A stretch of 64,000 nucleotides of DNA from Selaginella moellendorffii (Eukaryota > Plantae > Lycopodiophyta): positions 1,640,001 to 1,704,000 of the forward strand of contig NW_003314287.1 in the NCBI RefSeq assembly GCF_000143415.4, read 5' to 3'. Below the pieces are notes generated by a model. It saw only the letters and a list, made by a program, of their open reading frames with translations, was not told the DNA's origin and made no database searches. This document shows positions 16,430 through 64,000 of this stretch, in pieces. Made by a program: the position numbers and the translations under genes. How positions within the stretch are numbered: the stretch's first letter is position 1; each line of letters starts with the position of its first letter.

Positions 16430-16664
16430 ATTGCAGTTTTTGATCTTTTAACAGTTGTAGATAATGAAATTACATTCTTTGCATAGTATCAAAAAAATTA
16501 CTTATAGAATCTTAAAATCTATGAAATTTAGTTCACTATTAATTTATAAATGAAAATGTTTATATTTAAAGTTCTAGATTTTCTTACTATTATAGGTAAT
16601 TTTGAATAATTATTGACTCTGCAGATCATTGATCTAAAACTGTTAAAAGATCAAAAACTACAAT
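16430..16664. mobile_element. MITE-like element with ~38-bp inverted repeats inside an AT-rich block
   Basis: ATTGCAGTTTTTGATCTTTTAACAGTTGTAGATAATGA (from 16430) is the near-perfect reverse complement of 16626-16664; AT-rich non-coding interior. No TSD identified. Confidence 0.55.
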
Positions 16665-42258: not shown

Positions 42259-43559
42259 GGGGATGGTCCAAATTTGAGTTGAGCTCATATCAACACAAGT
42301 CAACTCAAGTCAACATAGTCAACATGAAGTCTTACAAATGAAATCTAAATTGAACAAATGAAGGTTCTAGCAAACTTTAAAATATTTAGATACGTAAATA
42401 TCTGAGTTAAAAGTTTCTATAAGATTGAATTGTTTAAAAAAGACAGAGTTCACAAGAACCTATCTTTTATAAAGTTATATTATTTTATTATGACTACTAT
42501 TACAGTTGTCATATTTTGATTTGACTACTTAATATTTTGAATATTTTTATAGTTGTAAATACTATTCCTTCATTCAAAAGATTTTTTAGGGTTCATGAGA
42601 AGATGGGAAACAAGGAAAATACAAAATCTTTGAGTAAGAGTTATAGTGCAAAAGAATATGATAATGCTAATTTTGTTTCACTACCACAATTTCCATATTA
42701 CACTCCTGGTCCTTGTTACCCATCTGGGAATGTGTAGACCACTATCATGATTGATAAAAATGCTCTTGTTGTTTCTGAAACAATAGTCCAGAGCAAAAGA
42801 AATGAAGAAATGAACAACATGGTGGAAAACACCAAGAAATCTACTCTATAAAACTTTCTATGACATTTGTAATTTGTATATTAATTCATATTAAAAACTC
42901 TATTGCTTGCTTATATTACAATCCTCTTATATGATAAGACCAAGGTATAATTTTGCAATGAATCCTCATTAAAAGTTTTTAGGAGTTGTTTGTGAATAAT
43001 AATAAAAGAAATTGAAATCTTTCGAAAGACTCAAAAGTAATATCACATCAAAGAATCAACTTTATTTACATTTCCAAGACTGAAAGGCAGTCTCACATGA
43101 GATAATGGTAGCGTGCTAATATGCTCTGCCACTATAATGTAGTCTATATTTCCTTGTAGTCTATTTCCCTAGACATTTGGCATGTGTAGAAAATAATATA
43201 TATGTAGCAAAGTAGGATTTCATCATAATGATAGAACATGTGTATACATGATAATCTAAAATTCTAGAAACTCTTATATTTTCACGGAAGACAACATCAA
43301 CATGGAATCCGTGTAAATCCGTGTAAATATAGTGAAAAGTGAAAAGTGAAAAGTGAATTTTACAAACTAAAGGTGGTAATACATGTTTTTTGTAGTAATG
43401 ACTGTTGGTAGTAATTTCATTCCAGCTCGACAAGATGCTTGTGAAGAGGAGTTGGAAGAACTCTCATCGACAACACGCTATATGCAATAACATATTATTT
43501 ATTGTTTGTTCATTCACTTAATTTTTTTATAAGTCTGTTCTATGTCCCCAATAAAACAA

Positions 43560-44368
43560 TGAGGCATTGTGGGTATTTTCATTGGCTCCTACAATAGATT
43601 GCTGACATCTTTCACGAAAGATGACATCAATATGGATATATGGCACAAGTTCAACCGTTGGTGCTGAAAGATATAAAGGCCATTGCTCCTAGTTGCGGCT
43701 TTCATTCTCTTTGACTTTTTAGATGGTCTTTCAGATATCAATAGGAAAGTTGAGGATTGGAACTTTCTCACACTTGACCACATGCGTGATGCATTCCTCT
43801 TGTCCGAAGCACTTATACTCGAAGTTGGCCATGTCATCTTCATCCTACTAAACGACCCTAACTTGATGAATGAGCTTATGACATGTGCAGTAGAAGTTCA
43901 TTTCAAGTCATTCTCTTCTGGATGTATTATGGATCCTATTGGCATCAATATGAGGGGTGTCCAAGGGAAGCATGAAAAGGTGAGTATGTATTTTATATTT
44001 TTATCTAATTTTTAAACATTTTTATTTTCCAGGTTATGATGTGGACCTATCATGCTTTTTGCAGAAACACACATAATGGTTTTCGTGATAGCGAATGTGT
44101 AGCATGTGTTTTGCCTGGGTATGACAGTTCCACTAATATCATACCCAACCTTGTGGATGAGCAGATCCGTAACACATTTCCAAGGTACCAATTTCAAACT
44201 CCATCAACAATACAAGTCTTGCTTGAGCTCTATTGCCCACCAGATGGTGTTGTGATTGATTGCATAACAAGTAGCGATTCTATGATGGAGGCAACACGTG
44301 ACTTTGGTAGGTTGGTGTTTGCTATTGAAGAATATCATTTCTTCAAATGCCGGCTCCAATCCGTGTAA
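43560..44368 (+). pseudogene. Beta-class N4C/N6A DNA-methyltransferase-like domain (decayed; segment inverted within the element)
   Basis: FILFDFLDGL..VEDWN..FLLSEALILEVGHVIFI lies at the DPPY-motif position, followed by FQTPSTIQVLLELYCPPDGVVIDCITSSDSMMEATRDFGRLVFAIE, which resembles QKP..L..LI..Y...GDVVLDPFxGSGTT..AA...GR...GIE. Both key motifs are non-canonical. Confidence 0.55.
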
Positions 44369-44581
44369 ATATAAGAGTTTCTAGAATTTTAGATTATCAT
44401 GTATACACATGTTAGTGTAGTCTATATTTCCTTGTAGTCTATTTCCCTAGACATTTGGCATGTGTAGAAAATAATATATATGTAGCAAAGTAGGATTTCA
44501 TCATAATGATAGAACATGTGTATACATGATAATCTAAAATTCTAGAAACTCTTATATTTACACGGATTTCCATGCCGGCTC

Positions 44582-46620
44582 TCAACATGGAAACTCTTGT
44601 ATTCCATTGTCATTTACATTGCCATTATTGCTAGCATTGACAACTTCCTCGTGGTCTAGTGTAGAGGTCTCCTTCTCTAGAAGCTCTAACTCCCAAGGGC
44701 ATTCTATCTTCCGTGCCTTTGGAACTCTTGCAAATATTGTTGGGTACATTCTTCCATCCTTTACACCCTTTGCAACAAGTCGAGTGCAAACTAGTGCCTC
44801 AAATAACATGCCTCTATATCGAAGATACCTGTAAACAATATATATTTTTAAAAAGTCTTAGAAATTATATTATACCTGTAAGCTGCACATCTCATAAAAT
44901 AAAGCTGACCATGTTGGCAATCATAAGTTGTTGTGCTTGTAGACTTCTCTGGCAGCCACCCCTCTTCAATCCCTTCCAATGATGTGTTAATGTAGATGTC
45001 AAAAGATATAAATGTGCCATTTGGATCGTCACCAATGTGTGGTGCCAAGAACTTCTCACCCTCACTTATAGTTTGCGTGATGTAAATAGCCCTTCTCATC
45101 ATGTTCTCAAATAGTTCTGGCAGTCTTTCCTCTCTGTTCATTAAGCGGACATTGAGGAAATCCAAAGTCTCTATCTGTTGCTTATATAAAAGTTTCGATT
45201 TTACAATATTGTAAATCATGTCATTTGGAGTTTTGTTCACTGCAAAAGTAACATATGCATAATTGCGAAAAATGAAGTGCGATAAAAACCTTACATTCAT
45301 GAGAAGAAATTTCGACTATAATCTTTAGCCACTCCTTCGGCCTGCGATTGTTTGCAATACATACTAGTTTCTTCAACTTTGAAGACTTTGCATGTTGAAT
45401 TTTATGCTCAATTTTTACAAACTCAGCTGAGAGCTCTTCTTGACTCTTCTCTAGATATGCAAGTTCGTAAGAATCTTGCTTGACCTTCACCAAAGGCTAA
45501 AAACTAAAACAATTAAAAGAGGTCCTTATAAAATGAAAAAGACATACCTTGCATCACATAGCAAGCATAAAATTGATTGGGTTGTTGAACCAAGTTGTAT
45601 TGTTATTTCGAGTGTATGAGTGCTAAATAAGTGTTGCAAGATCATCACCATAATGTTGGCAAATGTCATCCTCACTCAAGTCTGCTAAAATTCAAAATTG
45701 CTCAATGTCATGGACAAGGTTTTGCTTTTGAACAGCAAACTGCCCAAGCCTGCATTTAAACACGACAAAATAAGTTAAAGTGGAGTTGGAGATAAAATTA
45801 TAAAACTTACGTATTGATCTTTTGGCAGGCCAAGATAAGTCTGTTGACATCCAAAGGTCTCCTCGCATAGACATGGTCAACTGAAACATTGATATGGTAG
45901 ACGGGATCATCGCGAAAATGATTGTTGATACACTTCATCTAAGGCCCATATTGATAGTTACCATCAATAATTTGGAACATTGTCCCACAAGCTGTTAAGT
46001 CTCAGGATGGTTGATAAGCATGTTATCAAATTCCAGGGACTTCCTCCTCCAAATAGGATCCTAGCTATTCACAATTTCAAATGCGACAGTAACAATCTCC
46101 ATTGTTCTTAGTTTGCAAAAAGAGACTAGAAACATACTAATATTTGCCGCAAGGCCATTCTATTTGAACAAGTTATATATATCCGGGTTGACATACTTGG
46201 ATGCTGTGCGGACAAAGTTTGTCTGCTACAAATAATAAAGGGGGATTTCTTTAATCAAGTCATAAGGGCCTGGCCTCTTAAGCGCCTCAAGTGTTTCGTG
46301 AACTGCTTTTTCCTTTGTCTACATAACAGTCTCTTGGAAGCACTTGTCCACCATGTTGTCAAGAAGGTTTGCAACTTTTTCAGCTCTAGGTTGTTCCTTA
46401 GGTTCCCTATTATGAACACCACCAAATTGCCAACTTCAGGGATTTAAGCTGGTGGTGGGCCAATGAGGAGTAAAGGTGGAGGTGGTAGTGGTGATGGTGA
46501 GGGTGGTGGTGGTGGCGGCAGGGGCGGACGCAATAGTGGTAGTGGTGGTGGCAATGGTGGTGGTGGTGGTGGCAATGGTGGTGGTGGAGGTGGTGATTTT
46601 CCTTTTCTACAAGAGAAATT
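44582..46620 (-). pseudogene. ParB/Srx-like domain gene with poly-Pro N-terminal region (decayed, intron-containing)
   Basis: Manual translation gives EIPLYYL*QTNFVR and FQIIDGNYQYGP*MKCINNHFRDDPVYH (45977 downward). Each of the codons TAT-CAA and TAG is one transition from CAT-CGA (DGNHR) and TGG. Confidence 0.55.
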
Positions 46621-46699
46621 TTTTTTTGTCAAATTAAATAAAGATAATAAGAAATTCAAACAGTAAAAGAGAAAAAAAAAATCAAGTGGGCCCAAACTC

Positions 46700-47165
46700 C
46701 ACTTTGGGCAGTTTTGTTGCTCAAAAGGCCGAGGTTATTCAAATAACCTTAGCCCATTGGGCAGCCAAAGTGCCCAAGGTGGCTAGCCCGGGCTTGACCT
46801 CGGGTAGTTTGGCCGCTCGAGGAGCCGAGGTTATTTAAATAACCTCCGCCCCTTGAGTGACCAAACTGCCCGAGGTGGCCAGCCTGAGCTCGACCTCGGG
46901 CACTTTGGCCACTCCAAGGGCCAAAGTTATTCGAATAACCTCGGCCCCTCAGGCGGCCAAACTGCCCGAGGTGGCTAACCCGAGCTCGACCTCAGGCATT
47001 TTGGCCACCCGAGGGGCCGAGGTTATTCAAATAACCTCGACTCCTTGGGCCGGCCAAACTGTCCAAGGTTGAGGGCCCGAGCTCGACCTTGGGCAGTTTT
47101 GCCACTGCCAAGGTTATTTAAATAACCTAGGCCCCTCAGGTGGCCAAACTGTTTGAGGTGTCTAG
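46700..47165. repeat. Five ~96-bp tandem units, each with a 24-bp palindrome and a second hairpin
   Basis: GAGGTTATT(CG/CA/TA)AATAACCTC cores at 46731, 46827, 46923, 47019 and 47110; related units at 63880-64000. Confidence 0.9.
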
Positions 47166-47289
47166 CCCTAAAGAAGCAATCAAGAAAGAAGCAAGAGGAA
47201 AAAATGGAAGTGGAAGCAATCAAATCAAAACTCACCCTTGGTGGCAACTTTACTTCCTAATTTCTCGATCGTGCTAGATTTTTCGCGCA

Positions 47290-47535
47290 CTCAATCTCTC
47301 CCACTTATGTGCTCAGTCTCTCAATCTCTTGCACACTTAATCTCTCGATCTCTTGCATGCTCAATCGCTCAATCTCTTGTGCACTCAATCCCTCGATCTC
47401 TTGCGCACTCAATCCCTCGATCTCCTTTGCACTCAATCCCTCGATCTCCTTCGCGCTCCACTCACAGTGCAAACAGAAACCTAATCTTGGCAGCTACCCT
47501 AACCCTAATCCTGATGGTTGCCCTAACCCTAACCA
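47290..47535. repeat. 22-bp tandem repeats followed by CCCTAA repeats
   Basis: Repeated CGCTCAATC(C/T)CTCGATCTC-like units then ACCCTAACCCTAA; mirrored at 63465-63755. Confidence 0.85.
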
Positions 47536-48360
47536 ATCTCTTATCCTGGCTGTTCATTCCAAATAACCTAAATCTCAACCATCACAATATCTTTGATCTT
47601 ATTTTATCTTATCATTATTATTATATATGAATTATACTTCTTTATTTTGTATATTTTAATAATGATATAACTAGCACCTATCAACGTTTTTGTTATTAGA
47701 GATATGATATATTTTTTACATTATCTAGAAAGGATGCATTCTCATCAATATTTTGTACATATTTTGGAATCCTTACAAGAACTTTAAAGAGTATAAATAA
47801 GGCACATTAAAATATGTTGTACTATATCCATCTATGAATGGATGAATCCTCATCCAGAAATTTATTTTGTGTTGTATTAGATCCTAAACAATAGCCACAT
47901 GCTTTAAATGTCATTGACCAGTGTTCACAATTATGGATAAAACTTGAGTTGTACTATGAATCAAATCTGTCATTGAAGAATATGATTTTACAAGATTTAT
48001 TATCATCTACCACTTAAAATTTGACAACTTGACATATCACACGTGCTGACAATCAGATTAGATCTCTTGGTTTAACATGCTATAGCAGAATGTCATTACT
48101 GATATCATTATTAACTATCAAACTTCATGTGCTTAAAATCCTTCCTTGGATCTATGTGTATACATGCATCAGAGATCATAATAGATGACAGTAATATTAA
48201 TATTGTCACACTTGTACATGTTAAATTTGCTATAGAATTTAAATTCATTTTGTACGTTGTTGATATTCTTCTTATTACTCTATTTAAATTTCAATTATGT
48301 TTTACTATGGATTTTTATAAGTAGCATAAAGAGAGAGAACTTCAAAACCTATTGAGAAGG

Positions 48361-51300
48361 ATGGAGAGATTTTTTCTTCATTTTCGAGATCACCCACCTC
48401 TTTCATTCTCTCAAAGTATTGTTTCTAAAAGTTTTTTATGTCGGCATTTTGATCTTCATCTTGGCTCTATTTCTTTAGAGGCTGTGATTCACAACAACAC
48501 TGGTATAGTTGTATACTCAAAGTTTCTTCCTTCTAGTATGGGTGAGGGTGGACAACAATGGGATTTACAGAATTCCAGGTCGAAGAAGATTCGAGTTTTT
48601 GGATCTCCAGTCAAAGTGCCAAAATGTGCTCCAGCCAAAGTGAATGTGAAGCAAGAGTCAGTCGTTATCCTCTCGTCCTCTTTTAGTTCAAGTGGAGAAG
48701 TCATGCTAGTGTCGGTGCCAAATTCACCAGCTCCAGCTTCAGCTTCAATTCCAACTTCAGCAATATTCAAAACTGTTAGCAATGCTTTCTAGTTTTTGCA
48801 CCTTTCAATCGATATGCACTTGTTATTGTATAGGCTTATGAGGGAGCTTCCATCCTCTTATAATGGCAACATTTTCTTCGAGCTACCACCTCTTGTCAAC
48901 AGCATAGGTTCTAAACATAAGGGGATGGAAACCAAGCAGGATGTCCATAATTAGTGTAAGATCAAGACCACACACTTCCAACATTTTGAAGACATAGTGT
49001 TTATAGTTCATTGTGGTGGGCATTTAAATTGCATGGATGAAGCATGCAATTGAAACTATTATAGAAATTCTATATTTTTCGAAGGGTCTGCAGTCAATCC
49101 TCCAGCTTGTGACACCATTGCTATTGGATTCAAGTGTTGATTCTGCAAAAATGCTCCTCTATGTCATGCTATTTGTGAGGCCAAAATGTACTACTTTCTT
49201 CCATGGGATGGAGTGGCTGGAAGAGCTATAGTGCATGTTGGCACACACATGCATCTAATGCAAAAAGGGATATAAAGGAGTTCTCTCAACCGTTTCAAAG
49301 ATGCTATGTAGGAAGAGATTATGAGAAATTCATCTACAACTCCGAAGCATGTTTAGAAGACCGTCCTCAAGGATTTTATCTCAAACACTTTACTCAATCT
49401 AGGTTGCCAAAAGACTCAACTAAACGAGGCTAGTTTGTGGGACTTACTACAAGGAGTACAACCTGCTACTAACCTAAGGAGGTACATCCGTTATATTTCA
49501 TATGTTCTAATAATATCTTTTTCTTACATTATATTGTTTAGGATAAAATCTTGCATGTGTGAATCTCGAGAGGGGAAGTTGCAATAAAAAATTAACTCCA
49601 TCCTTGAATTGAAACGGACCTATCCATACGAGTTTATCCACGGAAGTTTGTTTCTAGACTAAGTTGTGAATGAGCAAGAGCACCCCTTTGTTTTCAAAAT
49701 GTTTACCACGGGTTTGACGCTGGGTTTTCGAGCGAGTGGGCAACATCCGTAGCTCGGTTTGCAATGGGACTTGAACCGTTGGAAAGCTTGCGTGAATCCA
49801 CCCGTTTCCACAGAAACGGATCCCGCTTTCGTTGCTCCACTGTCCCGCACCATTGCAATGGGTTTCGTGCCGTTCCTGCCTTTGGCATAAATCTTGTCTC
49901 CCGAATGGACATGTTTGGGTCTAGTGACCTTGCAAATGCATGCGTTCATTTTGACCATATGGAGCACGTATTAGGTTGGACAACCATGGGAGCTCATGTG
50001 TATGATCCAAGGTAATTTTTATTCTCATTATATTAAAATTGTTGTAATATTTGTGTTTACACAGGCTATATTGTAACTTGACAATTGCGACAGCAGAGTT
50101 TAAAGTATAAGACCAGATAGCCTAGGAAATATTTTGGAAGTCCCTCTTCAACAAGTCTGCAAACTTTCGCAATTTCATGGCAGATGGGGCTAATGCAAAC
50201 TGGAATGGTGTCCAAGTAGTTTTTGGGAATGGTCAGTCATTGGAAGGTCATGAGAGGATTTGTGAGTTCCATTGGGCTCAAAGCCTAAACCAACACTACC
50301 ACCTTATCAAGCTAGAGTTTCAATCATTGTTTAAAGAGTTGTGCAAAAAATGGCAGGTTGTACCTTCTAAAGAAGAGCATGAGACAAAAACAAATGAGAT
50401 CCAAATGTGGTGGCATGAAGATGGCCATACAAACGTAAGTTGCTTACCACAACTTGAGTCATGGTTAGCGTGGTGGGAAGTTAGGATGTTCTAGTGGGAA
50501 TATCACTCTTTTTAGGTTGGTTTTTATTTTTTCTTCTCCTTTTATTACTTTTTAATATTGCTTTTTCCATTAGGATCAACCACTTGAGGACCTCGCATAC
50601 ACCTTAACTATGAATTTCTCCGAAAGTAAGCATTGGAGTTAGCGTTCCTCTAAGGCAGGGAAAGGGAAGATGAGTCTATACAAAACTTGCCTATCAAATT
50701 TGATATGTGCTATAGAGCAATCTTTAAAAGCACTGATATTCAAGAAAGGAAGGTATGTGGGAACAAGGCCTTTTGTTGAGATGTTACATGATAGGATGAA
50801 GAGAAAATTAACTCCACCCACCCAAATAGTGGCAACTATAGTTGAGGAAGTGGTCTGTGGCACATCTATAGAGTACACTCCCCAAATTTCTATTGGTGAT
50901 ATAAAGACTATCCACTCAAAGCGTCATTTTTCCTTTGTTGGTGAAAATGTTGGTATAGAACTTGGAGTGAAAAGCTCTTATAGGCTTGATGTCAAATACC
51001 ATTTTGCTCCAAGATACCGCTCTCAGATTGAGCCACCTCAAGTGGCTAATGAAGAGAGTGCATCCTAACAGGTTGAAATTACTTATTGTAGTGTGGAGCC
51101 GAAGCAATGGGCAATCCGATGTGTGCTAGTAAAATCGAATGTAAGGTGTGTGTAAATGCTTCTAAAAGGGAAGTGTTGGGCTTGGATTCGTGGTGACAAA
51201 TCTACTTCTGTTCCAACCCCATGTTTCTATGGGGAAGCAGGATTTTTGAAATGGTGTTGGCTGTATTGTTGTAACACTGATGCCAACCATACGAAGTGGC

Positions 51301-51842
51301 TTGAAGACACTATAGTGACTAAATCTAATGCAGTACTTAAAGAATGGCCAGTTGCTAATGGGGTCATGCTCACCTCGGATGAGATTGAAAACCTTGAGAA
51401 ATTTAGTTTCAATTTTGAGAGGAGAGTTGGAGACATGAATGATAGAACTAGAACTATTCCTATAGAGATGCACAGGAGGCTAGCAAGAAAAGGTAAGGTA
51501 GTTAAATTTATTGGTACCATCTTTAAGCAAAAGCAAGGTCAAATTAACTTGGCTCAAACACTTGAGTGTGAGATTCTCTTCACGAAGTACATCACTACGT
51601 TTGCAAAAGAGTACATAGTCAAAACAAAAGGTGAAGAGTACACAATTATCATTCAAGACTTTTCTTCTTGCACATGTCTAGACTTTATGAAGCGCGAGGA
51701 ACATGGGAAGGCATATGCTCCTTGCAAACATATATACTACATCTTCATCAACATCTTGCACCAGGATCCTAAAGTGGATATTCATATACACCAAGTAAGC
51801 CTTACTATTGCTGAGTTGCAGAAAACTTTTGGAGCTAACTAG
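48361..51842 (+). pseudogene. Mutator-like transposase pseudogene (copy 1)
   Basis: Co-linear with the copy 2 gene but with many transition-derived stops, small deletions and a ~160-bp insertion. Confidence 0.92.
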
Positions 51843-51944
51843 ATTTCTTCAACACTATCGATATTTATTCTTTATCAATAATATAAACTTATTATACTTA
51901 ATATAATTAGTAAAAAAATGTTTTTTCATTTCACTTTTCATTTT

Positions 51945-52367
51945 ATATACTTCCAAGTGTTCTTTTTGTAATACTATCCATAGTACTCATATGTCTCAAT
52001 TTTTGTCTTTACCATCTCAAAAAAAATTTCATAGTAATCATTTGGATGCATGATGCAGTGTGTTGCGAAAGCATATATACCATCATATTAATCATCACCA
52101 TTATTTCCACCAAATGTTAGAAAACATATAGGGCATTTCTTGAAAGTGGCATTTCTAAAACAAGTAAGAGGGCATTCTTTTTCACCTAATTTGTTGCGCC
52201 TTTTGTCATTGCATTTATCTCCAACTCATGATTATTATCCTCTCTTTCATTCTCTTGTGTGATTTGGTTATGCTGTGCAATGGGATAGTTATTGCATCTA
52301 CTAACCCTTGAACCCTGGGAAGAAAGATTGTGAGAGTTAAAATTACTAACACTAAAACCTATAGACA
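51945..52367 (-). pseudogene. Decayed copy of the small zinc-finger ORF
   Basis: Homologous to 58760-59212; TGG>TAG stop at 52186-52188 and deletions. Confidence 0.8.
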
Positions 52368-53899
52368 TTTGTGTGTATTTCCCTTTTTTTGAATGAGAGT
52401 GTGAATGAAAATTTATAAATTCTAGACAGTATGCTATGATAAACCCCTCAAGAATGTATTCTAGAAAAGAACCAAGTCTTTCTTTTATATGCAATAAACT
52501 TACATTGGAATGATAGTGTGATTTGCAAATATCTTTAGGATCAAAGTTGTAGCTACATCGAGCGTGGACCATACTTGAGCTCACGAGTTGAAAAATTGAG
52601 CTCATGAGTCGAGCTGAAGTTTTAATTGTAGTTTAATATAAACATTAAAAAACTTTAAAATATTAAGGTTATGGTGAACTTAATAATTTTATAACTCTCT
52701 ACATATTATATAGATAAAAATGTTCTAAAGGACACTTCTTGTTCTAACAATTTAAATAGCTATAATAGGAATGTCTATTAGATAATAAAATAAGATGTTT
52801 GCAGAAAAAGTATTCATGTCACTTCTTTAAATTTGTACTCTGTGCTTTCTGGTTAGTAAATGTCAGGTTTGTCAGAATTAAAAAATTATTAAAATTTAAA
52901 TAAGATTTTATATAAAGCCATATAACCATTTGAAAGGAAAAAAAAAAACTGTTCATGGACAATGTTTGAGTATATATTAATGGGGTGGAATCACTTCTGG
53001 ACTTTGTGGTTGTGGACTATCAAAAGCTCAACTTCACACTTTTGAAGGATTTCCTGATCCTTGGATGAGTTTGGCAAATCAAGTTTGAGGCATCATAAGT
53101 TAGCTGCTTAGTAGGATAGAGATTAACGACAGTCACTAGACTTCTTGTCCCTACAATATTTATGGATACTCTCTTTTGGGAAAGCTTCAAGGATAGCCTC
53201 TAGAACTGTGTAAGAGTCACCTTGAAGGTCGTCAAGAAATCCAAGATCAAAAGTCTTATTTTGAAAAGGTATAAGCATATTGCCCATCAAGATCCCAAGA
53301 TTGCATAATAAAGTACATATATCTTGGAAGATTTCTTGCAAAATAGAAGTTAGTACATAAAAAGAAGAGACTGGGGGGAGGGGGTGGCGGGGTTTATATA
53401 TGCTCCAGGTATGAGTTGTGCACTATGGGAAGAGGTTGAAAGTTTTGTGACTGTTGTAGATACCACTCTCAGTCATTTGCTGGAGGTAATTGGAGTTGGC
53501 TGCTCGCTTAGAAGAGAGTGGTTGAACAAGAGTTTCTTTGTCCCAGTAGCCACAAACTCATCATCTTCACCCTTAGGAACTGCCTCACAGTCCTCCACAC
53601 CAACAAGTGTGTCACAAAGTCTTGTCTTATGATTATTCACGTGGAAGCTCACATGAAATACATCCAAACTCTATACTGATGTTGAGAGATCCTCCATAGG
53701 AGTCCCTTATGACTCCTCAAGTGGTGCTGGAGTTGGAAATATGGTTGGAGAAACCACCACTTGGACAGATTCCTAACTATACAATAGCAAACGGATCAAT
53801 GTGAAATCCTTGGATTTATTAAAGTTAAAGGACCTTTAGACATGTGTAGTGATGGCAAAGATGGATGTTTTTTAGTCCATGTTGAAGAAGTTGATTGAA

Positions 53900-55900
53900 C
53901 AACTTGGATCTCTAGCAGTGTGTCATCCTCAATGAGTTCTAAGAAAAGAACCTTGAAAGCCTGATCAACTTTAATAATGGAAGAAGTATCAATTACCAGC
54001 AGCTCAAATTTGGAACTTTGAAGGACTTTGTCATCCTATGATGGCTGTGGCACCTTGCAACCACGTGCATGACAACATGTTCCAAAGGCAAGTTTGACAA
54101 TTATCAATGGCATCCACACAACAACTCTTCTCAATGCCTGTGGCTGTTCTCTACTTCCAACTTGTCTCAAGTGCACTACAAGAAAATCCAATATGGAAAC
54201 CACACCATGCACCAAGATCTCGACACCGTGTTAGATATCTATGGGAATTACTAAGTGATTGATAAACATTTTGAGGATGATGTCTATATTGCTAACCACT
54301 TCCAAACCACTGAAGTGTGCCAAGTCAAGAGATGATATTGCTCTGGGAGCCTAAATTAAATAATGCTTGTACTTTTGAGGAAGAGTTTTTGATCTAGACC
54401 TCCAAAAAGAATGCTCCAAGATCATTAATGGTCTGGGTGTTAATGATATGCACATCATGTTAAGGTGCCACAAATAGGCCTGTGGACTTGGCAAAAGCCT
54501 CCAACTGAGAAGTGAAACTTAGTACACATCACCGAGAGTGATTTAGATTGGAGTGCCAACAATTTGAGCAAGAACCTCTTATAGGACTTAAGAGAGTGTA
54601 GAAGGCAGCTGGAAAATCCCACTCTAAAAGTCAAGTGAACATCTAGTTGTTGGATCCAAGGTTGTGGCCCAAGGCCATTGGAAATACTGAAGTATAGGGT
54701 ATAATTTGCATGCTTAGTGAGGTTCTAGACATTAGTGTTGAATCTTGCTCACCATCAATATCTGGGGTTGATGGAGAAACTTTCTAGTGCCCTTTAGTCA
54801 CAACAGCCACCTAATAGCCATCCTTTGCAATATAAACCATGCTAACATGCATGGGTGTCTTCCCTCTTGATGAAGGGGTGTTTTCAATCACTTTCTACTT
54901 TAATTATTTTTGGTATTTGTCTACTTGTGATGGAAGAGGCTACTACTGAACACACTGGATAGAAGGTGAAGCCCTGGATGAAGCTTCCAACATCTTTCTG
55001 TGTTATATATTGTAACATCACAATGCAAGCAATGCCAGGAATGAGGAGGCCATCTCAATCTCTTGGCCTATTATAAGCAGCATGCTCTAAGCTTCTTAAG
55101 TAGCTTCTTTTGCATTTGTTGCTATTGTTGGATAATCTCCTTGTATCCTGTGAGCTCTAATAATACCTTCTTAATCACTAAGGGAAATTTGTCATTGCTA
55201 GATGGGACTAAAGAGAAATAGCATATGACAATGCACGAGCTCTCTTTAAAAGGTGGGAGGAAAGCCTCCTCTACCCTGGAAATCCCAAGTTCTTAGAGAA
55301 GATCATGCTCTAGAGTCTCAATGGTAGTGAATGCCTCACAACATGTCTAGAACTTTCATTTAAGCATTTTCTATTAAAGATTTCCTTTTAGACTAGACAT
55401 GAATGTAATGATGCCATAAGATTCATTAGTGATGACCTTGTGCTGGACACACTCCTTCTAGTAAGACTTGAACCACATTATGTACTTTGACATAGATTCA
55501 TGTGCTTCTTGCTGAAAAGTGAACAAGTCCATGAGTAAGCAATATGCTAGTCACTCTTGATTGAAGTGACTCTAGAAAAATGCCTTGAATATAGAGTAGT
55601 AAACCATGTTTACCTCCAAGAAAGTCTTTGCTCATGCTGTTGCTTAGTCAATAAGTAATCATGAGAAGTCATAGAGCTTGTGATCATCCTCAATGATGTT
55701 GTTTGATGTGTAATATTGCTCAAAGTGAGTGATATATGTCTTAGTAGATTGCTAGAGAAGTATAATATGTCAATGCCTCATTGTAGAATGTGAATTTGCA
55801 TAAGAAGACCCATGGGTGGCAAACTCCCCGACACAGTATATATGGTGAATGATAAATCCTTTTAGCCAAAAAAAGCAATTTGATAATCTAGCTCGTGTAG
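53900..55900 (-). mobile_element. Decayed Ty3/gypsy-like gag-protease remnant
   Basis: FFLEV*IKNSSSKVQALFNLGSQSNIIS (~54415-54330) resembles a retroviral-type aspartic protease (ALxDSGAxxNxIS); CpG-depleted with many stops. Limits approximate. Confidence 0.55.
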
Positions 55901-55953
55901 AAGGTGTAAAAATGTCCTCATATCTTAAGTACTGTATAAGAGATTTTTGGTTG

Positions 55954-56700
55954 TGTAGTGCATGTGATTATGGGATGAGATTTTGATATACTGTCATTAT
56001 GGATCCTTGGAACCTTGGAGGATAAATAGGGATAAAATAGCCACTAAAGGCTCTCTCATCAAGCAATTGCCCCTTTTTTAGTTGGTTTAAGGGGAGAGAG
56101 ATAAAGTGCACTATATGTGGTATCAGAGTAAATAGTACAGGTTCGATTCCCATTGATTAGTGGCTACCTAAAATATAATATACCCTTGAGCAAAGTATAT
56201 TCCTACCCCTAAAATTTGAAAATCGTACATATTGGGCATCCATGCATATGTCCTTCCTCTTCTAGAGCATCCCAGACGAAGGTATCCACCATGGGACTGC
56301 ATATGTATTGGGTATTCATGCATACGTCCTTCCTCTTGTCGAGCATCTCAGACAAATGTATCCACCGTGGGACTATGGTACAGGTGGATGACTAGTTGCC
56401 TCCATGGAATAGCTAGTTTGCACAATGAAAAAATTGGTAAATTCAGTGCAGAAATGGAAGTGTTGGTTCCCCTTGGCTAAGTAGGGGTTGTTAGTCAATA
56501 ATCAATAAGGATATTGACATTTCTGAAAGAGGGGTGAGTGTAGCGTATGTGATCATGGGATGAGATTTAGATATACTGTCACCGTGGATCTTTGGAACCT
56601 TGGGGGATAAATGGGGATAAAATAGCCACTAAGGGCTCTCTCATCAAGCAATTGCCCCTTTTCCAGTTGGCTTAAAAAGAGAGAGATAAGGTGCGTTATA
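55954..56700 (+). mobile_element. Complete TRIM (terminal-repeat retrotransposon in miniature)
   Basis: 162-bp LTRs at 55954-56115 and 56539-56700; PBS TGGTATCAGAG (56118-56128); purine tract GAAAGAGGGGTGAG before the 3' LTR; 5-bp TSD GGTTG on both sides; no coding capacity. Confidence 0.93.
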
Positions 56701-56804
56701 GGTTGTTATCTTAAGTTAGAACGAGTGTGAATTATCCAATATATAGTAGATGCCAAGTTTTGGAAAATGTAATGCATTAAAGAACTTTAATTTATGTGAA
56801 AAGA

Positions 56805-57195
56805 GAGCACTCATTTTTGCATTGAATTTACCACAATAAAAAGATTGGTTAACTAGCTATTTTATGTAAGGCAATTAGTCATCCACTCGTACCACAATCC
56901 CATGGTAAATACCTTCATCACAAAAGGAAGGACATACATATGGATGTCTAATATATATGACTTTAAATTTAGGGGTAGGAATATATCTTGCTCAAAGGTA
57001 TATTATATTTTAAGTAGCCACTAATCAATGGAAATCGAACTTATGCCATTTTCTCTGATACCATATATAGCATACCCTATCTTTCTCCTTAAACTAACTA
57101 TAAGAGAGCCTTTAGTGGTTATTTTATCTCTCAAGGTTCCAAAGATCCACAGTGATAGTATATTTAAATCTCATCCTATGATCACATGCACTACA
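56805..57195 (-). mobile_element. Truncated inverted copy of the same TRIM
   Basis: The reverse complement starts TGTAGTGCATGTGAT at 57195 and has the PBS (CTCTGATACCA, 57053-57063) and internal sequence, but no 3' LTR. Confidence 0.85.
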
Positions 57196-58759
57196 ATATC
57201 TAGCTAAGAAAATGGGAAAAATATATAAAGGATGTTGTGGAAATCACTTAGTAGGATATAAAAACAAAATATCACTCAAAAGAAATGAAAAAAGAAAATA
57301 AACTCCAAACCTCAAAATGTCTTAAGGTGAATATGTTTTGATAACAATCTCTCAACTCTTGCCACAGAATTGAATGTGGATACACTTGTTAAAAAGCTTA
57401 GACTCAAATCAAGAGAATGAGATAAAAATCATGAGCTAAAATGCTAAAATGCCTAAAAATACGAACTCAAACATCAAATTCTAGTGAAAGAAAAGGAGAA
57501 TAAAAGAAAATGCACTCTTTTATATAGAAAATACTCACCTCTAGCATTAATAGAAAGCAACCGCATGACTGTGATAATCTCTCTATGAATGGCACCTCCA
57601 ATTCTCCCACAATCAAGCTAGAAAGTTGCAAACTTGAGCCATAAAGCATCGCAAAAGAAAAATTGTTATATGTTGTGGCCTAGAGTAAATTAGTTGTCAA
57701 GGAAGGACTCATCGGAAATCTTATCTTTAGATTTACATGCCAAAAAAATTAAAATCCTAAACTAGTCGCAGAATCATGAGCTTAGAGTGCTGGAAATTTG
57801 GTGCGAAAATAGAGGAGTGTGATCAACTTCTTCCATGTGACTGAATTCTTCACGAAACAAAACATTCTTTAGCTTGTCAAAAAGAGGACATCAAGTGCAT
57901 TAACCCAAATAAAGAACAGCTAAAATCAATGCTCTAATTGCAATAAATATCTAGAAAACCAAGCAAAAAGAGGGTAATATAGAAAACTAATGCAAGAATA
58001 TGAAAATCTTTTAACTTGCACTTTGGATTTTTGAAAGTAAAGCTTTATCCATCCTAAGGTCTTTAAGAACATGAATATAGCCACTAGAACTTGAGATCCC
58101 ACTCAATCTCTCATGAAAACTCTTCATTCTCTTAAGAAAGTTGAACTAGTTCTTCATGCTAAAGTCACTAACAGTTAGGGCATTTCTCAGCCTCAATTAC
58201 GACTCCATGCCCCCACAGGGTGCGGACCATACTTGAGCTCACGAGTTGAAGAGTTGAGCTCACGAGTTGAGCTCAATTTTCAATTGTAATTTAGTACGAG
58301 CATTATAAATTTTAAAATTTTAAGGTTATGGCGAACCTAATAATTTAATAACTCTCTATATATTATATAGATAAAAATGTTCTAAAGAACACATTTTGTT
58401 CTAATAATTTAAATATTTACTACATGCAATGATAGGGACATTTGTTAGAACATAAAATAAAATGTTTGAAAAAAGAGTATTCTTGTCACTTCTTTAAATT
58501 TGTACTCTATGCTTTTTGGCTAGTAAATGTTAGGTTTGTCAGAATTAAAAAATTATTAAATTTGAAATAAGATTCTATGTGAAACCATATAACCGTTTGA
58601 AAGGAAAAAAAATAACCGTTGATGTAAGCTTATTGCATATAAAAGAAAGACTTGGTTCTTTGTAAAATACATTCTTGAGGGGTTTGTCGTAGCATACTGT
58701 CTAGAATTTATAGATCTTCATTCACACTCTCATTCGAAAAAAGGGAAATACACCCACAA

Positions 58760-59212
58760 ATGTCTATGGGTTCTAGTGTTGGTAATTTTAACTCTCACAA
58801 TCTTTCTTCCCAGGGCTCAAGGGCTAGGAGATGCAATAACTATCCCATTGCACAGCATAACCAAATCACACAAGAGAATGAAAGAGAGGATAGTGAGGAT
58901 AGTGATCATGAGTTGGAGATAAATGCAATGACAGAGGGTGCAACAAATTGGGTGAAAAAGAATGCCCTCTTACTTGTTTTAGAAAAGTGCAATTCTGCCA
59001 CTTTCAAGAAGTGCCCCATATGTTTTCTAGCGTCTGGTGGAAACAATGGCAATGATCAGTATGATGGTATATATGCTCTTGCGACACACTGCAACATCAC
59101 GCACCCGAAAGACTACCATGAAATCTTTTTTGAGATGGTAAAGACAGAAATGGAGACACACGAGTACTATGAGCAGTATTGCGAGAAGAACACTCGGAAG
59201 CATATAAAATGA
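58760..59212 (+). CDS. Small transposon-borne zinc-finger protein (zf-XS/SGS3-like pattern)
   Basis: 150-aa ORF with KKCPICFLASGGNNGNDQYDGIYALATHCNITHPKDYHEIFF, convergent with the transposase and present in both copies. Confidence 0.6.
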   Translation: MSMGSSVGNFNSHNLSSQGSRARRCNNYPIAQHNQITQENEREDSEDSDHELEINAMTEGATNWVKKNALLLVLEKCNSATFKKCPICFLASGGNNGNDQYDGIYALATHCNITHPKDYHEIFFEMVKTEMETHEYYEQYCEKNTRKHIK

Positions 59213-59303
59213 AAAGTGAAATGAAAAAGCACATTTGTATTAATTATATAAAGTATAATAAGTTTTATTGATAGAGAATAAACATCGATAGTGTTGGAGA
59301 AAT

Positions 59304-62300
59304 CTAATTAGCTCCAAAAGTTTTCTGCAACTCAGCAATAGTAAGGCTTGCTTGGTGTATATGAATATCCACTTTAGGATCCTGGTGCAAGATGTTGATG
59401 AAGATGTAGTACATATGCTTGCAAGGAGCATATGCCTTCCCATGTTCCTCGCGCTTTGTAAAGTCTGGACATGTGCAAGAAGGAAAGTCATGAATGGCAA
59501 TTGTGTACTCTCCACTTTCTGTTTTGACTATGTACTCCTTTGCAAGCGCAGTGATGTACTTCGTAGAGAGAATCTCACACTCAAGTGTTTGAGCCAAGTT
59601 TATTTTACCTTGCTTCTGCTTGGAGATGGTACCAATAAATTTAACTGCTTTACCTTTTCGTGCTGGCCTCCTGTGCATCTCTGTAGGAATAGTCCTGCTC
59701 CTGTCACTCATGTCTCCAACTCTCCTCTCAAGATTAAAACCAGATTTCTCAAGGTTTTCAATCTCATCCGAGGTGAGCGCGACCCCATTAACAACCGGCC
59801 ATTCTTTAGGTACTGCATCAGGTTTAGTCACTATAGTGTCTTCAAGCCGCTTCGTATGGTTGGCGTCGGTGTTGCAACAATATAGCCAGCACCATCTTGA
59901 AAATCCTGCTTGCTTTCGTTCCCCATAGAAACATGGGGCTGGAACAGAAGCAGATTTTTCACCACGAATCCAGGCCCAACACTTGCCCCTCGGAAGCATC
60001 CCCACACACCTTACATTTGATTTTGCTGGCACACGTCGGATTGCCCATTGCTTCGGCTCCACGCTACGGTAAGCAATTTCAACCTGTTGCGATGCACTCT
60101 CTTCATCAGCCACTTGAGGTGGCTCAGTCCGAGAGCGGTGTCTTGGAGCAGAATGGTACTCGACATCAGGCCTGTGGGAGCTTTTTGCTCCAAGGTCCGT
60201 ACCAACATCTTCCCCAGCAAAGGAAAAACGACGCTTTGAGCGGACAGTCTTCATATCACCAATAGAAGCTCGGGGAGTGTACTCCATAGATGTGCCACGG
60301 ACCACTTCCTCAACTGCTGTTGCCACTGTTCGGGCGGGTGGAGTTAATTTTCTCTTCATCCTATCATGTAACATCTCAACAGAAGGCCCTGTTCCCATAT
60401 ATCTTCCTTCCTCGAATGCCAGTGCTTTTGAAGATTGCTCTATAGCACGTATCAAATCTGATAGACAGGCTTCGTATAGACTCATCTTCCCTTTCCCTGC
60501 CTCAGAGGAACGCCAACTCCAATGCTTACTTTCGGAGAGATTCACAGTTGGGGTGTATGCGAGGTCCTCAAGTGGTTGATCCTAATGGAAAAGGCAATAT
60601 TAAAAGGTAATAAAAGGAGAAGAAAAAATATAAACCAACCTGAAAAGAGTGATGTCCCCATTGGAACATCCTAACTTCCCACCATCCTAACCATGACTCA
60701 AGTTGTGGTAGGCAACTTACGTCTGTATGGCCATCTTCACGCCACCACATTCGGATCTCGTTTGCTTTTGCCTCATGCTCTTCTTCAGAAGGTGCAACTT
60801 GCCATTGTTTGCACAACTCCTTAAATATTGATTGAAACTCTGGCTTGATAAGGTGGCAATGCTGGTTTAGGCTTTGAGCCCAATGGAACTCACAAGTCCT
60901 CTCACGACCTTCCAATGGTTGACCATTCCCAAAAACTGCTCGGATACCATTCCAGTTTGCACCAGCCCCATCTGCCATGAAACCACGAAAGTTTGCAGGC
61001 TTACCAGTCCGCTTTAGGACAATATCAGAGAGGGACTTCCAAAATATTTCCTGTGCTGTCTGGTCTTGTACTTTAAACTCTGCTGTTGCAATTGTTAAGT
61101 TACAACGTAGCCTATGAAAACATAAATATTATAACAATTTCAATATAATGAGAATAAAAAATACCTTGGATCATACACATGAGCTCCCATGGTTGTCCAA
61201 CCGGATACACGCTCCATATGGTCAAAATGTACCCATGCATTTGCAAGGTCACTGGACCCAAACATGTCCATTCGGGAGACAAGATCTACGCCAGAGGCAG
61301 GGCCCATGGTAGACATTTTGAAGACGAAGGGGCGCTCTTGCTCATTCACAACTTGGTCTGGAAACAAACTTCCGTGGATGAACTCGTATGGACAGGTCCG
61401 TTTCAATTCAAGGATGGAGTCAATTTTTGATTGCAACTTCCCCTCTCGAGATTCACACATCCAAGATTTTATCCTAAATAATATAATGTAAGAAAAAATT
61501 ATTATTATAACGTATGAAAAATAATGGATGTACCTCCTTAGGCTAGTAGCAGGTTTTACTCCTCGTAGTAAGTCCCGCAAGCTAGCCTCGTTTAGTTGAG
61601 TCTTTTGGCAACCTGGATTGAGTAAGGTATTTGCGATAAAATCCTTGAGGACGGTCTTCTGAACATGCTTCGGAGTTGCAGATGAGTTTCTCATAGTCTC
61701 TTCCTGTACAGCATCTTTGAAACGGTTGAGAGAACTCCTTTGTATCCCTTCCTGCATTGGATGCATATGTGTGCCAACATGCACTGCAGCTCTTCCAGCC
61801 ACTCCATCCCGTGGAAGAAAGTAGTACATCTTGGCCTCGCAGATAGCACGACATAGAGGAGCATTTTTGCAGAATCGACATTTGAATCCAACAGCAATGG
61901 TGTCACAGGCTGGAGGATTGACTGCAGACCCTTCGAAAAATATAGAGTTTCTAGAGCGGTCTCGATTGCATGCTTCATCCACACAATCTAAATGCCCGCC
62001 ACAATGAACTATAGACACTGTGCCTTCAAAATGTTGAAAGTGTGTGGTCTTGATCTTGCACCAATTGTGGACATCCTGCTTGGTTTCCATCCCCTTCCGT
62101 TTGGAACCTGTGCTGCTGACAAGAGGTGGTAGCTCGAAGAAAATGTTGCCGTTGTAGGAGGATGGAAGCTCACTCACAAGCCTATACAAAAACAAGTGCA
62201 TGTCGATTGAGAGTTGTGAAAACTGGAAAGCATTGCTAACGGCTTTGAATATTGCTGAAGTTGGAGCTGGAGCTGGTGAATTTGGCGCCGACACTAGCAT

Positions 62301-62642
62301 GACATCTTCACTTGAACTAGAAGAGGACGAGAGGATAACAATTGACTCTTGCTTCACATTCACTTTCGCTGGAGCGCATTTTGGCATTTTGACTGGAGAT
62401 CCAAACACTCGAATCTCCTTCGACTTGGAATTTTGTAAATCCCATTGTTGTCCACCCTCGCCCACACCAGAAAGAAGAAACTCCGAGTATGCAACTATAC
62501 CGGTGTCGTTGCGGATCACAGCCTCTAAAGAAATAGAGCCAAGACGAAGATCAAAACGCCGACATAAAAAACTTTCAGAAACAATACTCTGAGAGAATGA
62601 AAGAGGTGGGTGATCTCGAAAATGAAGAAGAAACCTCTCCAT
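59304..62642 (-). CDS. Mutator-like transposase with GCM-like Zn domain, DDE core and SWIM finger; 4 exons (62642-61534, 61473-61165, 61111-60640, 60581-59304), 1055 aa
   Basis: Three GT-AG introns give one uninterrupted frame. Motifs: VHFDHM (D), FMADGA (D), CEFHW (CxxH), TVNLSESKH (E), and SWIM CTCPDF...PCKH. The start codon is the first in-frame ATG. Confidence 0.88.
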
Positions 62643-64000
62643 CCTTCTCAATAGGTTTTGGAGTTCTCTCTCTTTATGCTACTTGTAAAAATCTATAGTG
62701 AAACATAATTGAAATTTAAATAGAGTAATAAGAAGACAACGTACAAAATGAATTTAAATTCTATAGCAAATTTAACATGTGTAAGTGTGACAGTATTAAT
62801 ATTACTGTCATCTATTATGATGTCTGATGCATGTATACACATAGATCCAAGAAAAGATTTTCAGCACGTGAAGTTTGATAGTTAATAATGATACCAGTAA
62901 TGACATTCTGCTATAACGTGTCAAACCAAGAGATCCAATCTAACTATCAGCACGTGTGATATGTCAAGTTGTCAAATTTTAAGTGGTAGATGATAATAAA
63001 TCTTGTCAAATCTTATTCTTCAATAACAGATTTGATTCGTAGTACAACTCAAGTTTTATCCATAATTGTGAACACTGCTCAATGACATTTAAAGCACGTG
63101 CCTATTGTTTAGGATCTAATACAGTACAAAATAAATTTCTGGATGAGGATTCATCCATTCATAGATGGATATAGTACAACATATTTTAACGTGCCTTATT
63201 TATACTCTTTGAAGTTCTTGTAACGATTCCAAAATATGTACAAAATAGTGATGAGAATGCATCCTTTCTAGATAATTTGTAAAATATAATATCATATCTC
63301 TAATAACAGAAATGTTGATAGGTGCTAGTTATACCATCATTAAAATATACAAAATAAAGAAGCATAATTTACATATAATAATAATGATAAGATAAAATAA
63401 GATCAAAGATATTGTGATGGTTGAGATTTAGGTTATTCGGAATGAACGGCCAGGATGAGAGATAGGTTAGGGTTAGGGCAGCCGTCAGGATTAGGGTTAG
63501 GGTAGCCGCCAAGATTAGGTTACTGTTCGCATCGTGAGTGGAGCGCGCGAGAGATCGAGAGATTGAGCGCGAAGGAGATCGAGGGATTGAGCGCGAAGGA
63601 GATCGAGCGATTGAGCGTGCAAGAGATCGAGAGATTGAGCGCGCAAGAGATCGAGAGATTGAGCGCGTGAGCGGGAGAGTTTGAGCGCGCGAGCGGGAGA
63701 GATTGAGCGCGCGATCGGGAGAGATTGAGTGCGTGAGCGGGAGAGATTGAGCGCACAAGAAATCTAGCACGATCAAGAAATCGAGGGAGGAAAGATGCCG
63801 CCAAGGGTGAGTTTCGATTTGATTGCTTCCACTTCCATTCCATTTCTTCCCTTTTTTTTTCTTGATTGCTTCTTTGCTGGCCGAGGTTGAGCTCGGGCGG
63901 GCCACCTCGGGCAGTTTTGCTTGCCGAGGGGTCGAGGTTATTGAGATATCCTCGGCCCTCCGGGCAGTCAAATTGCCCCAGGTGGAGGGCGGGCTCGCTA

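Follow-up and report, generated by a model that had tools for sequence, protein, structure and literature searches.

A divergent Mutator-superfamily transposon of Selaginella moellendorffii with a putative ParB- and methylase-like accessory gene

The DNA analysed here is a stretch of 64,000 nucleotides from Selaginella moellendorffii (the window; contig NW_003314287.1, positions 1,640,001 to 1,704,000, with all coordinates below counted from its first letter). It is plant nuclear DNA, and the region 42259-64000 is more AT-rich than the remaining window. This region probably holds two independent, oppositely oriented insertions of one high-copy, autonomous transposon of the Mutator superfamily, about 10.7 kb in length and including a ParB/methylase-like accessory gene. 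Elements of this kind were first reported from algae (2025), and the present one belongs to a land plant. In the proposed family layout two genes diverge. The four-exon transposase would have a DDE core of the IS256/MuDR type, preceded by a WRKY/GCM-type zinc finger at the N-terminus and followed by a C-terminal SWIM finger; in the product of the accessory gene a ParB/Srx-like domain would precede an N6/N4 amino-methyltransferase-like domain of the beta class. The two start regions would be separated by a palindrome array and a 24-bp tandem array, with a small zinc-finger-like open reading frame (ORF) beyond the transposase.

Two insertions and their ends

A repeat search and global alignment matched 46690-52505 to 58622-64000 in inverted orientation with 90.2% identity, so that the two inverted copies of one element reported in a first-pass annotation of the window are indeed present. 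Copy 1 extends over 42259-52957, and copy 2 from 58218 to beyond 64000. The substitutions between them run strongly in one direction: at 352 sites a C or G of copy 2 is T or A in copy 1, against 86 sites with the reverse. Grouped by their context in copy 2, 30% of CG cytosines are changed in copy 1, with 26% of those in CHG and 10% of those in CHH; the CpG observed/expected ratio, 0.67 in copy 2, is down to 0.39-0.44 in copy 1 including its cargo (i.e. the accessory-gene side of the element). This CG- and CHG-biased C>T pattern is that of deamination of plant-type 5-methylcytosine, and copy 1 is therefore an old, methylated and dead insertion. It has decayed by methylation-type C>T change, with many stops and two inversions.

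At 42259, 52560 and 58218 the sequence has a common terminus, GRGNNNGGWCCAWAYTTGAG, whose pattern is matched four times in the window, where 0.11 matches would be expected, in keeping with the related termini first described. The octamer directly preceding 52560 (GCTACATC) is the reverse complement of GATGTAGC, while the left flank of 42259 is GATGTAGT. The two sides of the target-site duplication (TSD) thus agree at 7/8 positions once the right side is reverse-complemented; the chance of 7/8 agreement at a fixed place is ~4e-4. The termini are ~20 bp long and imperfect, and the probable TSD, as read at this one locus, is 8 bp.

The right end of copy 1 is rearranged. The sequence 52566-52957 matches 58224-58624 in direct orientation (85%), whereas everything to its left matches copy 2 inverted. 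An inversion of 52506-52957 accounts together for the terminus that points the same way as the left one, for the reverse-complemented TSD and for the direct match to the end of copy 2. Because the right end was inverted along with its TSD and some flanking DNA, copy 1 ends at ~52957 and not at the terminus itself. The first-pass annotation had copy 1 delimited by its termini and an 8-bp TSD; a probable duplication is supported by the 7/8 match, while the simple delimitation does not hold, given the reversed right side and the displaced end. Two other readings of these sequences were rejected. If 52560 began a third, truncated copy, the reverse-complement match of the TSD would have to be a coincidence (again ~4e-4). 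A fourth terminus at 53999-54016, closing a short derivative at 52560-54022, has two mismatches and lacks the G-rich tip and subterminal repeats.

The transposase

In copy 2 three GT-AG introns (61533-61474, 60 bp; 61164-61112, 53 bp; 60639-60582, 58 bp) interrupt the transposase gene. Once they are removed, three long ORFs of the minus strand form a single open frame of 1,067 codons, or 1,055 counted from the first Met. The frame contains FDH, MADG, CEFH (within CEFHW), NLSES and the SWIM pattern CxC...CxH, and the catalytic D, D and E are all present, so copy 2 may still encode an active enzyme.

Homologs of the copy 2 ORFs were found in metagenomes and other assemblies. The protein P0001 is 30% identical across 94% of the N-terminal piece, and the C-terminal piece has 194 representative homologs. 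In a word-based search of a protein collection that lacks this genome's own family, the 503-aa piece of the transposase retrieved one homolog only, at 30%. The superfamily was tested by fold because the Pfam MULE (Mutator-like element) model matched no protein tried. An AlphaFold2 model of P0001 was made from a 13-sequence alignment; its predicted local distance difference test (pLDDT) score is 67, with the zinc-finger and core regions at 80-95. Foldseek comparison of this model with the Swiss-Prot models returned FRS5, FRS11, FHY3, FAR1, Kluyveromyces lactis alpha3 and ZSWIM1/3/9, together with the NOF-FB protein and IS256-family transposases, at probability 1.0 and E down to 3e-8. In the PDB the matches were a GCM domain and the IS256-family ISCth4 transposase.

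Further observations point the same way. The language-model neighbours of the transposase carry PF10551. The SWIM CxC...CxH residues are invariant in 13/13 homologs, with Pfam SWIM matches at E 0.014 and 0.0026 that are below the gathering score, and a CxxH motif follows the second D (CEFHW). On the predicted fold, the element belongs to the Mutator superfamily as a divergent, FAR1-like member. The transposase of a Mutator-like element recognized in the first-pass annotation is thus borne out by resemblance of the P0001 model to FAR1/FHY3, ZSWIM and IS256 proteins, though without a Pfam MULE match.

The accessory gene and the intergenic arrays

In a DNA sequencing run of the same species the summed contig depth is 287 at 42000-42183 and 28,745 in the next bin, which holds 42259; it then stays at 12,000-88,000 over 42184-46415. 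Summed contig depth is not a copy number, but the ~100-fold jump falls exactly at 42259. The cargo at 42.3-46.6 kb is as repeated as the palindrome region and is therefore not a one-off capture, the outcome against which the first-pass annotation had set its own reading.

Relatives of the element were found by a profile search with the C-terminal transposase alignment, which led to homologs on long contigs. On the ENA contig ctg132215 (loci L072 and L074) a multi-exon gene is divergent from the transposase. One of its exons shares a domain with a counterpart in L073 and with decayed copies in L031 and L048, loci from moss-associated metagenomes. The domain reads '...MVRPTL..D...LE.EF..GYRDGAAIFYV...WDP...KNLKFYVCDGNHR..AW...', with the box KFYVCDGNHR..AW, which shows the DG/GxxR-type motif of the ParB/Srx superfamily behind a hydrophobic strand. 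In L072/L074 and in L031 the domain is upstream of the transposase and divergent from it, whereas the arrangement is convergent in L073 and truncated in L048.

A profile built from L072, L073 and L031 matches the minus strand of copy 1 in two colinear pieces, 46267-45983 (6.9 bits) and 45986-45882 (4.2 bits); the best of 60 locally shuffled windows scored 0.9. At the columns where the relatives have DGNHR...W the window has FQIIDGNYQ...stop. Each of its codons at these places (TAT, CAA and TAG) could have arisen by a single C>T or G>A change (from CAT, CGA and TGG, respectively), as would be expected of a decayed DGNHR...W box given the pattern of decay in copy 1. Homology of 46267-45882 to the accessory gene of the relatives is well supported by these alignments. 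With the ParB-like frames on the minus strand and the transposase of copy 1 on the plus strand, the decayed gene is divergent from the transposase, as had been described.

The label ParB/Srx-like is less secure. The only database matches of the relatives' domain were Pfam DUF1015 (E 0.014), which we take to be a family of the ParB clan, and PHROG 'ParB-like partition protein' (E 0.11), both falling on DGNHR. The hhalign program aligned the same segment to P1 ParB KIEILDGSRRRA with a probability of 0.15%, which is not significant. A PDB profile search with the domain was negative, and a scan of viral contigs with the ParB-like alignment gave no match. Given the weak DUF1015 and PHROG matches and a failed structural model (see below), we use 'ParB' as a motif-level label. 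Of the ParB-like gene originally proposed, the gene itself is confirmed by its homology to the relatives' accessory gene, while its identity as ParB depends on weak motif-level matches.

The second part of the accessory gene appears to be methylase-like. The frame at 44009-44365 reads '...LLELYCPPDGVVIDCITSSDS...GRLVFAIEEY...'. In a feature atlas derived from a protein language model it scores 0.95 with 184 shared features, and 94/100 of its nearest clusters are PF01555 (N6_N4_Mtase), with phage and bacterial proteins as the best neighbours. Aligned with residues 152-232 of a phage adenine methylase (80 residues, the motif I region) it scores 70, where the maximum of 300 shuffles was 55; the shuffle test is not independent, since that methylase had itself been selected from a database search (E 7). 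By these features 44009-44365 is of N6_N4 methylase-like character. Each departure of its motif I (TSSDS) is one G>A step from AGSGS.

The ParB-like exon of L074 is followed by three exons that read, in turn, '...LDVIFIDCPENL...WN...DDGCIVLF...', '...LLEATSITGDLILDCTASTG...' and '...GRDILALEGNK...'. Their order would be that of the beta class, with motif IV before motif I; weak support comes from Rossmann-methylase neighbours (0.90) and a PHROG 'methyltransferase' match at E 0.38. Motif I of L074 reads LDCTASTG. The same order of IV then I would hold in the window, where 43677-44012 has 'FILFDFLDG...WN...' in place of the 'VIFIDCPEN...WN...' of L074 (a comparison by eye, with pairwise scores within the null). 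At the candidate position of motif IV, DFLD in the window (by eye) and DCPE in the intact L074 both lack an aromatic residue and depart from the canonical (D/N/S)PP(Y/F/W). A tblastn search with the ParB-like and motif IV exons of L074 against 50,697 phage records found no match, and the best E in the phage methylase search was 7. The amino-methyltransferase-like motifs first noted in copy 1 are thus supported by the PF01555-like features of 44009-44365; they lie on the strand opposite to the ParB-like part, and their catalytic motif is non-canonical.

The methylase-like frames are on the plus strand of copy 1 and the ParB-like frames on the minus strand. In one DNA contig from this species, positions 43405 and 44678 are adjacent but in opposite strand orientation, as expected if other copies carry this 1.27-kb segment reversed. 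With moderate confidence we take 43406-44678 to be the second inversion in copy 1. A pair of foldback insertions in the decayed cargo (Table 1) may be linked to it.

Each 96-bp unit of the palindrome array contains a 20-bp palindrome, GAGGTTATTYRAATAACCTC, and an inverted repeat with 16-bp arms, CCAAACTGCCCGAGGT ... ACCTCGGGCAGTTTGG. The former is found six times (0.01 expected) and the latter 14 times (0.4 expected). The array lies between the starts of the two genes, and the order of the arrays is the same in copy 2 up to the end of the window. The relatives have arrays at the same intergenic place with unrelated sequence: in L074 the units are 21, 23 and 15 bp, the 23-bp unit being palindromic, and in L031 a 136-bp unit with palindromes is repeated five times. 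The array noted at first inspection is accordingly real, with 4.7 units at 46727-47168 between divergent genes, and two relatives also have arrays. The ORFs at 63369-63971 (minus strand, 200 aa) and 47238-47630 (plus strand, 130 aa) were rejected as genes, since they are read-through of the 24-bp array ('SRSLARSI...'). We note that 2 kb past the accessory gene of the relative, L074 contains a fragment of a Ty3/gypsy chromovirus (15268-17224, with Pfam matches to Chromo, integrase and RNase H).

Beyond the transposase and convergent with it is the ORF of 150 aa, intact at 58760-59212 and broken in copy 1, that had been described as having a zinc-finger motif. The zinc-finger-like motif is there. 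The zf-XS-like label (PF03470) did not hold, as no profile matched at E up to 0.1. At that threshold the ORF had no Pfam match of any kind, and a PDB search gave nothing relevant. The exact product was not on record in a sequence look-up, and a counterpart was absent downstream of the related transposases in the loci compared. We regard it as a candidate gene only.

Searches with other pieces of the cargo were negative. Pfam, NCBIfam, PHROG and PDB searches of all open pieces at 43.3-46.7 kb gave no ParB or methylase match. The longest, of 155 aa, had no homolog in the word-based protein search or the domain libraries. Cargo pieces of the window had no tblastn match in 71 related loci, and the contigs of the closest transposase homologs (P0002-P0005, 4 kb or less each) were without cargo.

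Table 1. Positions in the window of the features of the two copies
Feature	Position	Strand	Basis or remarks
Left TSD, copy 1	42251-42258		GATGTAGT; one-mismatch reverse complement GCTACATC at 52552-52559
Left terminus, copy 1	42259-42278	+	GGGGATGGTCCAAATTTGAG; pattern search and depth rise
AT-rich subterminal region, presumed 3' side of accessory gene	42279-43400		33% G+C, high depth, no coding signal
Partial foldback copy, 154 bp	43135-43288		99% identical to 44413-44566, 1.28 kb away
Segment whose orientation in copy 1 probably differs from that in other copies	43406-44678		opposite-strand joint in same-species DNA contig
Candidate N-terminal half of methylase-like domain	43677-44012	+	by eye; DFLD at 43713-43724
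C-terminal half, N6_N4 (beta-class) amino-methyltransferase-like domain	44009-44365	+	motif I VVIDCITSSDS; language-model features
Foldback insertion, 211 bp, like a miniature inverted-repeat transposable element	44358-44568		perfect 56-bp inverted arms
Longest open stretch (155 codons) of decayed accessory gene	44851-45315	-	between ParB-like and methylase-like parts; ORF list
Decayed ParB/Srx-like domain	45882-46267	-	one frameshift near 45985; DGNYQ...stop; profile from relatives
GGT repeat, proline-rich frame; possible 5' end of accessory gene	46447-46606	-	RNA reads are low-complexity partial matches only
Palindrome array	46727-47168		96-bp unit x 4.7
24-bp tandem array, copy 1	47283-47458		~6 units; upstream of transposase
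Transposase remnant, copy 1	48352-51842	+	tblastn of P0001, ORF list; many stop-bounded pieces
Broken copy of 150-aa ORF, copy 1	52105-52400	-	stop and frameshift relative to 58760-59212
Inverted terminal segment, copy 1	52506-52957		46-bp flank, TSD 52552-52559, terminus 52560-52579, 380 bp of subterminal DNA
Terminus inside inverted right segment, copy 1	52560-52579	same direction as left terminus	GAGCGTGGACCATACTTGAG
Terminus, copy 2	58218-58237	+	GGGTGCGGACCATACTTGAG; flank CCCCCACA at 58210-58217
150-aa ORF, convergent with transposase, copy 2	58760-59212	+	intact; CPIC...HCNITH (CxxC...HxxxxH)
Transposase gene, copy 2	59304-62642	-	four exons; splice model, homologs and fold
24-bp tandem array, copy 2	63541-63754		9 units
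Start of palindrome array, copy 2	63877-64000		cut by window end

Outside the two copies, an intact and intronless gene for a pentatricopeptide repeat (PPR) protein of 883 aa with an E motif occupies 37966-40617 on the minus strand, 1.6 kb to the left of copy 1. The CpG observed/expected ratio of this gene is 1.0 (i.e. it is undepleted, unlike the transposon). Between the copies, 55953-57195 has a separate repeat structure, with 169-bp direct repeats (87%) and 300-bp inverted arms (74-85%), and is probably another small transposon. Further away, 4 kb at 14001-18000 have a very low G+C content (0.29-0.36) in surroundings of 45-58% G+C.

Alternatives, function and comparison with known systems

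Several observations weigh against reading the region as a Mutator-superfamily element with a ParB/methylase-like gene. Pfam MULE (PF10551) had no match at any threshold tried among the window pieces, P0001, nine long homologs and the ORFs of the related loci. Pfam ParBc was never matched at any threshold tried, and the AlphaFold2 model of the ParB-like domain (from a 2-sequence alignment) reached a pLDDT of only 44, besides the non-significant alignment with P1 ParB. For the methylase-like part, the atlas score is a lead and not an alignment; Pfam N6_N4_Mtase was never matched, NCBIfam and PDB sequence searches were also negative, and Smith-Waterman comparison of the window's methylase-like pieces with the exons of the relative remained within the shuffle null. 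The two domains are seen fused in one protein only in that relative, which is ~27% identical. In the window the accessory gene is seen in decayed form only, the cargo of copy 2 lying beyond the end. Three RNA-seq runs of the species (~12% of each read, compared with the copy 1 region 42000-47500 at 82% likeness, so that paralogs at least this similar would count as well) gave essentially no transcripts, with low-complexity partial matches on the GGT repeat and a few reads at <1x. Finally, binding of the palindromes by the accessory protein is purely inferred.

Two rival accounts were weighed. The cargo could be one or more separate repeats that merely adjoin a Mutator element, with the ParB- and methylase-like signals arising by chance or from another element. 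Its linkage to the transposase is indeed seen once here, in a region that holds at least one foreign foldback insertion as well as rearrangements, and the family databases gave no significant match. Against this, the termini and TSD enclose cargo and transposase jointly, the rise in depth falls exactly at 42259 and the depth is high thereafter, in loci of other organisms (L072/L074 and L031) the same ParB-like gene diverges from the transposase, and the profile score is far outside that of the 60 shuffles, so that we consider separate repeats very unlikely. It is equally improbable that misassembly of a high-copy repeat produced the two inversions of copy 1 (and perhaps even the inverted pair). 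The family is highly repeated, short-read contigs across it are fragmentary, and near-identical inverted repeats are a classic source of mis-joins; yet the copies differ at 10% of sites in a strongly directional manner, which indicates distinct loci, and the inverted terminal segment carries a matching TSD, which is not expected of a random mis-join. Two insertions of one transposon that includes its accessory gene is thus the reading that we retain.

In the mechanism we propose, the ParB-like part of the accessory protein would recognize the palindromes of its own element, much as plasmid and phage ParB acts on parS, and the protein would serve as a partner in transposition or in the control of silencing. 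Since motif IV lacks the aromatic residue both in the window and in the relative, a DNA-binding or S-adenosylmethionine (AdoMet)-sensing partner is likelier than an active DNA methylase. A role as an active DNA methyltransferase (N6-adenine or N4-cytosine) by which the element would mark itself has been proposed for similar genes in algae (PMC12477816), and the DNA-marking system suggested in the first-pass annotation would be of this type. The C-terminal half is N6_N4_Mtase-like by its language-model features, and every departure in motif I is a single G>A step from the AGSGS of an AdoMet loop, in a copy riddled with such changes. Set against this are DFLD here and DCPE in the intact L074, neither with the aromatic of (D/N/S)PP(Y/F/W). 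We therefore think an active methylase unlikely; it is the less probable version of the function, and methylation is doubtful. A broader and decidedly tentative suggestion is that of a eukaryotic analogue of ParB/parS, in which a ParB-like protein with a catalytically dead methylase domain would bind the palindrome array of its own element and thereby assemble a transposition complex or protect the bidirectional promoter against silencing. Mutator, Sola1 and Plavaka elements of hosts as distant as algae and vascular plants might share such a means of self-recognition.

The first-pass annotation knew of no described MULE with such cargo. That no longer stands, as algal Sola1, Plavaka and Mutator elements of this kind were reported in 2025 (PMC12477816; 10.1101/2025.02.11.637652). 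In Ectocarpus, Sola1-1_Ec32 has an accessory protein of 1,104 aa, ParB-like with an N4C/N6A methylase, encoded divergently from the transposase (PMC12477816). In Bostrychia Plavaka elements PAG2 combines a methylase with SET, and PAG3 a ParB-like part with a 2OG (2-oxoglutarate) oxygenase; tandem inverted-repeat arrays adjoin PAG3, and there are homologs in Chondrus Plavaka and Mutator elements (10.1101/2025.02.11.637652). ParB-fused methylases have been described in chlorophytes and chytrids, with land plants not listed (Iyer et al. 2016, PMC4738411). A literature search on ParB/methyltransferase Mutator elements and Selaginella found no land-plant report.

The algal elements and the one described here have in common an accessory gene opposite the transposase, in which a ParB-like part is joined by a methylase-like domain of the prokaryotic N6/N4 type, and tandem inverted-repeat arrays beside the ParB-type gene, for which self-binding has been proposed. 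They differ in that the host here is a land plant, the length is only ~10.7 kb and motif IV is apparently degenerate. Unlike Sola1 or KDZ/Plavaka, the transposase here is of the FAR1-like MULE type, and the likeness to the algal proteins is one of description, not of sequence comparison. If our reading is correct, the class of ParB-like and methylase accessory genes extends from algae to a vascular land plant, in a compact Mutator element. The functions of such genes in transposons are predictions from sequence. The open transposase frame of copy 2 and the short, well-defined palindromes make this family tractable for assays of binding and activity; the gain from the window itself is modest, with copy 1 dead and the cargo of copy 2 out of view.

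With MuDR and other MULEs, FAR1/FHY3 and IS256 (ISCth4) the element would share the DDE core fold, a WRKY/GCM-type zinc finger, the CxxH motif and the SWIM finger, and its probable 8-bp TSD is within the MULE range of 8-11 bp. Unlike MuDR, it is too divergent for PF10551, its termini are ~20 bp and imperfect where MuDR has terminal inverted repeats of 100-200 bp, and its second gene is unrelated to mudrB. It resembles VANDAL21 (Hiun) in being a MULE with an accessory gene and short element-internal repeats. VANC is an anti-silencing protein whose action on the internal repeats of VANDAL21 has been shown in Arabidopsis; by contrast the domains here are ParB-like and methylase-like, and an anti-silencing role is conjecture. 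The ParB-methyltransferases of phages and plasmids, and the methylases of ParB-terminase loci (PMC4738411), likewise have a ParB-like N-terminus and an amino-methylase C-terminus. The order of motifs in the present family also appears to be that of the beta class, IV then I, and its nearest language-model neighbours are phage and bacterial PF01555 proteins. Unlike the phage proteins, the accessory gene here is a spliced eukaryotic gene with introns of 50-100 bp, has no similarity at the level of BLAST to 50,697 phage records and has a non-canonical catalytic motif.

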